DNA of 64,000 nt from Klebsormidium nitens. Its lineage: Eukaryota > Plantae > Klebsormidiophyceae. Both the position numbers and the translations under genes were made by a program. Position 1 is the first letter of the stretch. Every line of letters starts with the position of its first letter. The DNA lies in the NCBI GenBank assembly GCA_000708835.1, contig DF237209.1, positions 56,268-120,267 of the forward strand. The letters are read 5' to 3'. Below are positions 53,401-56,400 of this stretch, piece after piece. The notes under the pieces were generated by a model. The model saw only the letters and a program-made list of their open reading frames with translations, ran no database searches and was not told the DNA's origin.

Positions 53401-56400
53401 GCTGTCGCGAACGAACCCTTCTTAACCCGCCTTTGCACGTATGAACTCGTTCAAGATCTTTCTTGCACATAAAGCCGCACACGTGACAAGCGACGAGCAT
53501 ATGCTGCAGAGCTTTCTTAACCCCTTTCTTAACTCATCCCTCCTCAACCGTCCTCCACCACCCCCAACCCAAATTGGCGGGCATCATCTCGATCGAGTCC
53601 TTCTGCGCAGACAAGGGCGCGGTGAATGTAAGCAACGCATGGCTGTCGTAGGGGTTTCTCACCCCCAGCCGTCTAATTACCCCTACTTTACCCCTCCGTG
53701 ACCCATACCTGCAGGCATCAACTCCTTCAAGTTCTTCTGGCATACAAGGGCGCTCTCATGCTGACCGACGAGCATCTGCTGCAGGGCTCCCTTAACTCCT
53801 TCCTTCAACCCAAACATCCCTCTCAACCTCGCTAATTTCCCCCTCAACCTAATATTGCAGGCATCAATTCCTTCAAGTTCTTCCTCGCATACAAGGGCGC
53901 ACTCATGGTCACCGACGAGCAGCTGCTACAAGGCTTCCTTAAGCCCTTCCTTAACCCAAACATCCCTCCTCAACCTTGCTAAACCCCCCCTTAACCCAAA
54001 TTTGCAGGCATTAATTCGTTCAAATTCTTCCTGGCGTACAAGGGCGCGCTCATGGTCACCGACGAGCAGCTATTGCAAGGCTTCCTGCGCTGCAAGCAAC
54101 TAGGCGCGCTGCCGCAGATACACGGCGAGAACGGCGACGCGGTCGCGCTGTGGCAGCAGAAGATATTTGACGACGGGATCACGGGGCCCGAGGGGCACGC
54201 GCTCTCCCGGCCATCATTTGTGAGCCGACCCCGCCTTTCCTCTTCTAATAAGAGAAGGAATCTTTTCAGGTTTTTCACAAACTGAGGAGTCTACTTTTAG
54301 AACTTGTGATGCCCGATGCAATCGAGGGGGACGAGGTGCCTCCGGCCAATCTTTCGTGAGCCGACCCCCCCTTCTCTCTGCAGCGCGGAAATTTCAACTG
54401 AGCCCCCCTTCTATATCTTACAGCACGGAAAGTCTACTTGAGCAGACCCCCCCTTTCTTGCTTTTCCAGCGCGGGAGGTCTACTCAAGCCGTTGTTCCTT
54501 TTCGTGTTTTTCCAGCAGTCGTCGCCTGCGTTTCTTGGTGTCGCTTGTTACCAGCCGACCGACTTTTCGTTTCCAGCTCTGATAAGCTCGGGTAGTCGTT
54601 TTCAGTGGGTGCTCTATGAGTGGCTCTGTGAGCAAAGACGCCTGCCCGCTTCTTTAAGGCTCACTCACTACACTCAGTGAGTCGATAGTCACCAGCGAAA
54701 GAATGAGCCAGCGGCCGACGTCCACTCCAACGAAAGAGCAAAGAGTGCGTTTTATAGGCCATGTCTCCAGAAACGCGCCTCGAACGTTACCTTAATAGCT
54801 GTCGTAAGCCTTATTTGGCAAACTGCATATCAATCCGCTCTTCTGTTAGACATTCGAGCCGTCTAAAGTACATTCCTCGAGTGCTTCACAGGGCCATGCT
54901 TCCCCGAAAGCCGTGACGTCTTAGCGCTAGAGACCTTTCCGGAAGACCCTCAAACGAAAACCTTTTGTCGTCTGACAGCTGGAGGGCGAAGCAACGGGGC
55001 GCGCCATCCGGCTAGCCCACCTGGTGAACGTACCGCTCTACGTGGTCCACGTTATGAGCAAAGACGCGCTCGACGAGGTGGCGCGCGCGCGCCAGGCTGG
55101 TGAGTTCCTCGAGGCTTTTTGCCCAGTGCAAGTCACCGGGCCTTCTTTTGCACATGAAATCGGGGGGGCTGCCGCCCCCCCGAGCCCCCCGCTCCTTCCT
55201 CTTTGCGGTCTTTGCGTGGTTGCGCGAATGTAGACTGAAACTTAGTAAAAGTTTTGAAGTGGAGACCCGCAAAATCAGTCTCTTCAACCTCGCCGTCGAT
55301 TTCGAAGCCGTATGCAGGCTCTGAATATTTTCTCGTTCTGGTTTCCCCAAGTGCTTGCTCTGCTGTGTTCCATGCTATCGAAGCGGACAGCGGGCATTTC
55401 TGCAGCCCACCCTGAGCCCACCTCACTAGGGCAAGCGTGCCCAATCCTCCAGACTGAGCAGAAGTCACATACCCGGCCACGTTCCAGCTGAGACGACATG
55501 CTTCGCAATCCCTCTCCAGAATGTCCTCTACTTACGGATTTTATCTTCAGTGGCTGCTGTCCTCATCCGCAGGTCAGCACGTCATTGGCGAGGCGGTGGC
55601 GTCGGGCCTGGCGCTGGACGAGTCTCGCATGTGGGATCCAGTCTTCGACGTTGCCGCGAAGTGAGCCCTAAAACCTTTTAGCTCTGAAAACAGTCTGGTC
55701 CAATCTAATGTGGTAGATTGGCTGTTTCGTTGCACCGTGCGGCTCACGATGTCGCTTTCCAAGAAATCAGAGTCCGGTTCTCCGCAAAAACATTCTGGCG
55801 GTAGTCTCGTAAGCTGAACAATCCGAGGCCTGAGTGGAATCTTCCAACTCATTTGCTTTTGCTTTCGATGCGGTGAAAGTTTAGACCCATCTCGCACCAC
55901 TGCAACTCCGAAAACCCTGCAAAGCGAACCACTTGATTCACTCCCGCAACGTCATAACCGTCTCTTGAATGTCAGCAGGACCCCCAGCTTACATCAGCTT
56001 TTCTGCCCTAGGTACGTCATGAGCCCCCCAATCCGGAGCAAGGACCACGGGGACGCCCTTCAGGCCGCGCTGGCGGGGGGAGTGCTCCAGATCGTGGCGA
56101 CGGATCATGCCGTGTTCAACTCGACGCAGAAGGCCGCGGGAAGGAACGATTTCCGCGTCATTCCGAACGGTGTCAACGGTAGGCGCCTTGTTGAGTCGGT
56201 CTTTGGTTGACACTATGTTTTTAGATTGTCAATTGCGCTTGTGGCGTCGATCACGGCGTGTTCAACCCGACGCAAAAGGCCGCCGGCCGGGGCGACTTCC
56301 GGATCACTTCAAACGGGGTCAACGGTACGTACCGGTCTGCCTTTGCGCGCTCTCCGCTGTCCGTCCGCAGCTGCTTGGCGCGGTCGAAGAGTTGGGTTTT

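Follow-up and report, generated by a model that had tools for sequence, protein, structure and literature searches.

Tandem exon duplication is reportedly a source of alternative and mutually exclusive exons, and is said to have been described by Kondrashov and Koonin in 2001 and by Letunic et al. in 2002. Tandem genomic duplication can also produce new introns, as proposed in the Rogers model, for which several cases have been reported (Hellsten et al. 2011, PMC3265369; potato RdRp, Ma et al. 2016, PMC4974935; Drosophila, PMC2891723). The closest known case to the locus described here is the minisatellite in intron 7 of the human F7 gene, whose first 37-base-pair unit spans the boundary between exon 7 and intron 7 (Borensztajn et al. 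2006, PMC1557585). Here we analyse an intron of a dihydropyrimidinase gene of Klebsormidium nitens that contains repeated copies of its own splice junctions. The gene lies in a 64,000-nucleotide (nt) stretch of contig DF237209.1 (assembly GCA_000708835.1, positions 56,268 to 120,267 of the forward strand), which we refer to as the window and within which all positions are counted. The locus is probably a ladder in which duplicated 3' splice-site modules arise and decay by birth and death, and in which the copy closest to the working exon, copy B, is an intronic pseudo-exon start. A literature search found no paper on splice-junction ladders of this kind in Klebsormidium.

We use the term echo for an intronic copy of a splice junction together with the adjoining exon edge. 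The working exon is designated copy A, and the echoes upstream of it are designated B to E. Coordinates of all features are given in Table 1. Tandem Repeats Finder detects a repeat with a 147-nt period, 2.6 copies and 86% matches over 53710-54086, and a repeat search combined with MAFFT adds the older units D and E, which start near 53573 and 53429. In the MAFFT alignment, each of the five units joins the terminal part of the intron to the opening 80 nt of the exon. The intron part contains branch-point-like motifs of the CTTAAC type, followed by TGCAG and accompanied by a tract rich in C and T. As expected of a splice-junction array, the copies run head to tail, the unit spans the exon/intron boundary and the end unit is the authentic junction. 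The 60-nt tails that precede B and A are 86% identical (51 matches, 8 mismatches and 2 gap columns), and echo C has a 1-nt deletion together with the non-silent changes V>L, Q>H and F>S. The intron comprises approximately 575 nt of acceptor-side array and 180 nt of donor-side echoes; about three quarters of its 987 nt are copies of its own two splice junctions.

The array is present in independent DNA data. A 7199-nt Logan contig, possibly derived from the same strain as the assembly, matches 52700-55161 with zero differences or gaps at a depth of 20.4, like its neighbours. This exact k-mer contig match at single-copy depth rules out an assembly artefact or collapsed haplotypes. The original prediction, made from the sequence alone, had described a tandem array of the exon start including its acceptor, and both repeat programs and the DNA contig bear this out. 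Its count of five copies holds when the working exon is included as one of them, and its progressive decay with distance is roughly but not strictly correct, identity to the exon being lower in D than in the more distant E. It had also noted that the acceptor AG of B is intact and that plain use of this acceptor meets a stop, which we locate as an in-frame TAA at 53980-53982, within the tail of unit B and reached by read-through from B. Inspection of the array for an antisense gene, an independent open reading frame or a structured RNA gave only short, unremarkable open reading frames and no Rfam match at E<=0.1.

The messenger RNA (mRNA) uses only the working exon at the level of assembled contigs. 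Six RNA runs, taken from several studies, agree on a dominant contig in which 53020 is joined to 54008, with word depths of 85-444. Contigs of these runs show no other joint in this intron, no variant letters in the exon and no B sequence, with the proviso that contigs drop rare variants and that nonsense-mediated decay (NMD) would remove B-containing transcripts. The silent differences of B had been proposed as barcodes for its appearance in mRNA; in these contigs we find no B variants, and neither a 53020>53861 nor a 53932>54080 joint. A search with words sampled from 53700-54005, covering B and C, returned full matches only in DNA runs, and 0.00 in 19 of the 19 RNA runs listed. The sole intronic RNA contig here spans 53315-53566, in one run and at about 1% of mRNA depth. 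Use of B is therefore bounded at roughly a percent or less of steady-state mRNA, and most probably B is a pseudo-exon start that stays silent and unexpressed.

The spliced translation of the RNA-defined exons corresponds exactly to a segment, beginning at residue 98, of the 523-residue K. nitens protein GAQ85913.1, which is annotated as a dihydropyrimidinase. This protein aligns end-to-end with PDB 5e5c (E=1.5e-147, residues 46-511), with the GIDPHTH (HxH motif) and NSFK segments aligned. Lys191 of the SFK motif, encoded by AAA at 54022-54024, aligns with K150 of PDB 5e5c, in agreement with the original prediction that the duplicated segment includes this lysine. From established knowledge of the cyclic amidohydrolase family, we take Lys191 to be the carbamylated metal-bridging residue. 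The likeness to known dihydropyrimidinases and D-hydantoinases (PDB 5e5c and 2vr2) covers the full length of the host protein, including the SFK lysine. The protein itself is ordinary, and the finding concerns the structure of the gene and not the enzyme. All seven introns observed for the gene in RNA contigs are GT..AG, and its real donors (GTGGGT, GTGAGC, GTGAGT, GTGAGC, GTAGGC and GTATGC) are of the GTGAGY type.

Table 1. Features of the dihydropyrimidinase locus in the window, and related loci. A slash within a sequence motif marks a splice cut.
Feature	Position or source	Strand	Evidence or description
Exon	52209-52285	+	RNA contigs
Upstream coding exon, ending ...AAAAAG before donor GTGGGT	52831-53020	+	RNA contig joints, six runs
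Intron, 987 nt, GT..AG, hosting the echo array	53021-54007	+	RNA joint 53018>54006 (cut +2) at full mRNA depth, six runs
Two donor-junction echoes AAAG/GTGGGT..., period 66-68 nt (three occurrences with the original)	53085-53135, 53151-53201	+	Repeat search
Echo E, old; 67% identity to exon; acceptor lost	53439-53516	+	Alignment
Echo D, most decayed; 60% identity to exon; acceptor lost	53581-53655	+	Alignment
Echo C; 82% identity to exon; AG intact at 53713-53714	53715-53791	+	Alignment
Echo B, youngest; 88% identity to exon; AG intact at 53859-53860	53861-53940	+	Alignment
Hypothetical GC..AG intron of the original prediction, 147 nt (CAAG/GCTTCC ... TTGCAAG/G)	53933-54079	+	Not seen in RNA contigs
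Tail of unit B, the working 3' splice-site module: CTTAAC motifs, C/T-rich tract, TTGCAG	53941-54007	+	Sequence
Working exon (copy A), 212 nt	54008-54219	+	RNA joints
Donor-junction echo of working exon: last 16 exon nt + GTGAGCCGACCCC...	54340-54379	+	Repeat search
Weaker third copy of working-exon donor junction	54422-54461	+	Repeat search
Exon	54979-55099	+	RNA contigs
Exon	55573-55660	+	RNA contigs
Exon	56012-56178	+	RNA contigs
Second echo in the gene: 3' part of exon 56012-56178 plus donor, 147 nt downstream (compared with 56094-56181)	56241-56327	+	Comparison
R1 (L001)	596-nt metagenome contig		Protein identical; 16 silent differences in 210 nt; echo 136 nt upstream of exon
R4 (L012)	4.5-kilobase Logan contig		Protein identical; 17 silent differences in 210 nt; whole intron covered
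R2, R3, R5 (L002, L003, L013)			86% protein identity; older decayed echoes in orthologous intron

Relatives of the locus were gathered by a protein search with the exon, cluster look-up and contig retrieval, which gave the three informative groups at the foot of Table 1. The many silent changes of R1 and R4 at an identical protein indicate that silent turnover on the exon is rapid. The orthologous intron of R4 contains at least six acceptor-side echoes, spaced approximately 128-178 nt apart (L012 1400-2330), compared with four in the window and at least one in R1. R4 also has two donor-side echoes with 51 nt of exon each (L012 2620-2830), which differ from the exon by 5:2 and 4:1 silent to non-silent changes; both keep the ancestral ATC, while the R4 working exon now has ATT. 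Donor-side echoes equivalent to that at 54340-54379 are present in R1 and R4. The nearest R4 echo carries the derived, R4-specific GCC at codon 9 and was therefore born after the species split, so that echoes have arisen independently in separate lineages. This echo has three silent changes together with CAA>TAA at codon 23 and TTC>TTG (F>L), and the R1 echo has two silent changes together with TTC>TCC (F>S). The unit sizes (136 nt in R1, 138-178 nt in R4, and 147, 146 and 147 nt in the window) lie near the size of a nucleosome, perhaps by coincidence.

A second echo is found further downstream in the same gene, at 56241-56327. It differs from its exon by 9 silent and 7 non-silent changes and a 1-nt indel, and is clearly decaying. 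The intron that carries it is retained at a low level, as seen in RNA contigs 56208-57084 and 56369-57084 at a depth of about 9-10, compared with 245-340. The stop and the F>L and F>S changes in the echoes of relatives, and the seven non-silent changes in this second echo, support neutrality of such copies. In R2 and R3, the old echoes diverge at about the rate of the surrounding intron and show no codon-position bias when counted on the alignment. A single DNA-pattern scan of metagenomes for further relatives matched nothing beyond GC-rich algae that are unrelated and a homologue that lacks introns.

We compared copy B with the working exon to determine the direction of each substitution. The segments 54008-54087 and 53861-53940 have exactly ten mismatches and the same translation in the exon frame; the earlier count of ten differences, all silent, is reproduced by this direct comparison. 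The mismatches lie at exon positions 54012, 54018, 54024, 54033, 54036, 54048, 54072, 54073, 54075 and 54087. The last of these (CTT in B, CTG in the exon) falls at the end of the repeat unit, where every older copy has T followed by intron-type sequence. It is thus a repeat boundary and not a substitution, which leaves nine substitutions in 25 codons, with B letters C53865, C53871, G53877, C53886, A53889, A53901, G53925, C53926 and A53928. With the three related Klebsormidium loci as outgroups, and the R1 echo and copy C as additional ones, approximately six of the nine are placed on the working exon branch and two on B, while that at codon 3 is assigned to neither. Among the four working exons, ATT, AAA and CTA (codon 21) are found only in that of the window. 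GCG (codon 9) and TTG (codon 22) are derived on the exon because B, the R1 exon, the R1 echo and copy C all have the other state. At codon 8, the CTC that R4, R2 and R3 have in common with B places the change to CTG on the lineage of the exon. Only GCA (codon 13) and CTA (codon 22, third base) are derived in B. Copy B is accordingly closer to the working exon of R1 (4 of 75 sites differ) than to its own (9 of 75).

Polarity changes the meaning of the silent pattern. The original prediction had read it as protein-level constraint on B, since neutral decay of an intronic copy should yield mostly non-synonymous changes. As some six of the nine arose on the working exon, which tolerates silent changes alone, this expectation applies to just the two or three changes that belong to B itself, all of them silent and all at G/C third positions. 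The probability of a fully silent set is 0.01-0.19; it varies with the transition bias and G/C-site mutability of the mutation model, and with the number of changes (two or three) credited to B. The raw silent divergence between A and B is very high, with nine changes over roughly 17-21 silent site-equivalents. Since the tails of B and A are 86% identical, about 6-9 differences are predicted for a neutral copy beside an exon that accepts only silent changes, as observed. Once polarised, the 9:0 pattern is moderately unlikely (p roughly 0.003-0.05), and the all-silent appearance of B comes mainly from working-exon substitutions, the repeat boundary and ascertainment. Polarisation removes the main argument for an intron birth with B under protein-level selection, an idea that the data do not support.

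The reading that we favour is a ladder that grows at the exon and decays away from it. Repeated tandem duplication of about 135-180 nt per step would copy the 3' splice-site module (a branch-point-like CTTAAC, a pyrimidine tract and AG) and, with it, the opening 80 nt of the exon. The probable mechanism is replication slippage or unequal exchange. The copy farthest downstream would be the only one to remain contiguous with the rest of the exon, and it alone would provide the open reading frame that is found in mRNA. Each older copy would then become an intronic pseudo-acceptor and decay, and the intron would gain one unit per event. Copy B would be the youngest pseudo-exon start in this ladder and presumably evolves neutrally, while the exon parts of echoes in relatives may occasionally be refreshed by gene conversion.

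Several observations weigh against a purely neutral ladder. About 2.5-5 non-silent changes would be expected in copy B, which has none, and the branch counts of about 6 on the exon and 2-3 on B are opposite to the ratio of roughly 1:3.3-4 expected from mutable sites (binomial p~0.007). Silent changes on the window lineage are found at 7 of 75 positions in the echoed segment 54010-54084 and at 15 of 682 elsewhere in the compared exons, a 4.6-fold excess (Fisher p=0.0036, with R4 and R2 as references). No such excess is seen on the R4 lineage in the same 75 nt, and the gene-wide branch changes of the window and R4 are equal (22 vs 21). Copy B and the R1 echo differ at 5 of 75 sites, compared with 52 of 206 sites of the intron aligned downstream (p=4e-4); this stretch is an echo ladder in its own right, and its alignment may be wrong. 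When five echoes are pooled, echo-lineage changes fall at 11 of 109 third positions and at 5 of 218 first and second positions (p=0.0045; 4.8-fold), and among third positions at 9 of 53 four-fold and 2 of 56 two- or three-fold sites (p=0.026). The RNA contigs also leave room for isoforms that are rare or degraded by NMD.

Mutational explanations account for this bias only in part. Six pooled echo/exon pairs give 32 silent to 13 non-silent differences where about 40% silent are expected (p=1e-4, or p=0.009 with the B/exon pair removed), and many echo-lineage changes fall on the G of NCG codons. Pure hypermutability of G/C sites would raise the expected silent share up to about 0.65 and make the 32:13 ratio unremarkable, but it gives a maximum of about 2.4-fold, not 4.8-fold. 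In a bisulfite-like DNA run (X29), every G of 53355-54032 is read as A (80 of 80), which indicates that minus-strand cytosines are unmethylated throughout the array and in the exon's first 25 nt. Methylation-driven deamination is therefore not supported as the cause of the third-position changes over this interval. It is an unlikely but serious suggestion that young Klebsormidium echoes evolve as if coding though absent from mature mRNA, either through exchange with live exon edges or through low-level productive use.

Two alternatives give copy B a role in splicing. The original prediction proposed that the B acceptor is used, that a nascent 147-nt GC-AG intron then restores the message, and that B is under selection at the protein level. 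The lack of non-silent changes in B agrees with this, as do the intact acceptor in both K. nitens and R1 and the position of the sole non-silent change of the R1 echo (TTC>TCC), which lies 3' of the proposed CAAG/GC cut; tandem duplication can also make working introns in other systems, as two papers report (PMC3265369, PMC4974935). CAAG/GC is in fact the sole in-register donor/acceptor pair one unit apart, as ATG/GTCACC has no matching AG and no other pair exists. Its donor GCTTCC (GCTCCC in R1) is unlike the real donors of a gene in which 7 of 7 observed introns are GT..AG, and its acceptor would sit within exon sequence, just downstream of the strong TTGCAG and without a pyrimidine tract. 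B-barcoded RNA is absent from the contigs of the six runs and B words from the 19 listed RNA runs, the TAA of the nearest R4 echo, at codon 23, precedes the equivalent cut, and the product would be the normal protein, which leaves little for selection to work on. We regard this proposal as extremely improbable. Recursive splicing through B is likewise rejected from the sequence, since joining ...AAAAAG to B regenerates AAG/GCATCA, a very poor donor. A regulatory role, in which B and perhaps C would be retained to tune expression, as a poison segment or pseudo-3' splice site that leads to unproductive splicing and NMD, or to aid removal of the long intron, draws on the complete branch-point, pyrimidine-tract and AG modules of B and C, which are on par with the real one, on the premature stop that use of B would bring at 53980, and on the intact acceptor of the exon-adjacent echo in three species. 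Such a decoy is nevertheless very improbable, given that no inclusion is seen at contig level, that the copies are not orthologous across species (the nearest R4 echo was born after the split) and vary in number (4, at least 1 and at least 6), and that the role does not predict codon-position-specific conservation.

The other two alternatives concern the origin of the variants, for which the original prediction had already named gene conversion and introgression from a diverged allele as possibilities. Under concerted evolution with a selective filter, echo and exon would exchange sequence by gene conversion or unequal crossover, non-silent variants being erased, or lethal once transferred to the exon, while silent ones circulate. 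The intronic copy would then evolve like coding sequence, and the echoed exon edge would gain additional silent variants. Exon parts are far closer than tails in both R1 (3 of 75 sites differ, 96% identity; 31-nt tails with 24 matches, 4 mismatches and 6 gap columns) and R4 (5 of 75, 93% identity; 60-nt tails with 39 matches, 14 mismatches and 14 gap columns), which points to refreshment by gene conversion in these relatives. Within the window, differences amount to 12% for the exon part and 14% for the tails, with no sign of recent conversion. Exchange would also fit the AAT at codon 2, a hint of conversion in that it is common only to the window's exon and B, as well as the reticulate silent states at codons 3, 8, 9, 13 and 22 among the exons and echoes of three species, the excess of silent changes in the echoed 75 nt and the four-fold-site bias of echo-lineage changes. 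By our reasoning, however, simple conversion models leave the expected ratio of echo-unique to exon-unique changes as it is, and nine lasting silent differences imply a conversion rate close to the mutation rate, too low for second-order selection. The exon-unique ATT, AAA, CTA and TTG moreover have no donor in the present array, and we consider concerted evolution rather unlikely as the overall explanation. A diverged donor, by which the exon start (or, in reverse, the echo) came from a diverged allele or paralogue through recombination, conversion or introgression, would account for a set of differences that is entirely silent, the very high raw A-B silent-site divergence, the proximity of B to the R1 working exon and the concentration of window-unique changes in the echoed 75 nt. 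Window-unique silent changes nonetheless continue at 54120, 54165, 54168 and 54219, the gene-wide branches are 22 and 21, and no foreign tract is evident; the 64-kilobase window has no second copy of the working exon, and the assembly is a single haploid-type one of uniform depth. Klebsormidium is not known to be sexual, which also counts against this origin, and we judge it quite improbable.

As a base rate, the window contains only three echo pairs of at least 45 nt. A direct repeat at 1520-1571 and 1686-1736 (88% identical, 166-nt offset) is possibly an echo in a different gene. Two further repeats in the window are unrelated, a perfect 13-nt repeat of 5.7 copies at 37714-37787 and a 27-nt repeat of 3 copies at 3590-3669. 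In R2, the intron after the orthologous exon contains a (CCCTAAAA)n run (L002 6343-6383), the complement of a telomere-type TTTTAGGG repeat, which is absent from R3.

As a birth-and-death ladder, the locus offers a clean, dated example of intron growth, in which at least three Klebsormidium lineages have duplicated the same junction repeatedly and independently of one another. Every copy preserves the exon as it stood at a given time, and such ladders could serve to recover the history of silent sites and neutral rates within genes. If the residual coding-like bias proved general, it would point to a so far unrecognised exchange of sequence between exons and the copies within introns, and if this exchange operated genome-wide, introns would act as both reservoirs and archives of exon variants.

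The locus shares features with each of the known systems. As in tandem exon duplication, a copy of a coding exon with its own acceptor and an unbroken reading frame lies nearby. A duplicated alternative or mutually exclusive exon has both splice sites and is included in mRNA, whereas B holds only the first 80 of 212 nt of the exon, has no donor and no GT in its 67-nt tail, runs into the in-frame TAA at 53980 and is absent from the mRNA contigs. With intron gain by the Rogers model, the locus shares a tandem duplication that leaves equivalent splice-like positions one unit apart, such that removal of one unit restores the message. Those cases duplicate exonic AGGT sequence and the new intron is seen to be spliced, while at this locus the duplicated segment includes an acceptor that was already present, and the intron that it ends merely becomes longer. 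The sole pair is an AG/GC with a very poor donor, the sequence offers no new AG/GT pair one unit apart, and the RNA contigs reveal no new intron spliced from transcripts. The F7 intron-7 minisatellite is closer in that each unit contains a copy of the splice junction, the intronic pseudo-sites, though potentially functional, are normally silent, and only the exon-adjoining site is used. The donor echoes at 53085 and 53151 are its direct analogue. The main Klebsormidium array differs in being acceptor-side, with units of 135-180 nt that include 80 nt of coding sequence, and its copies are diverged and of mixed ages, whereas the F7 array is described as a polymorphic, near-identical variable number tandem repeat. 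In Klebsormidium, furthermore, the arrangement recurs at several junctions of the gene and in related species.

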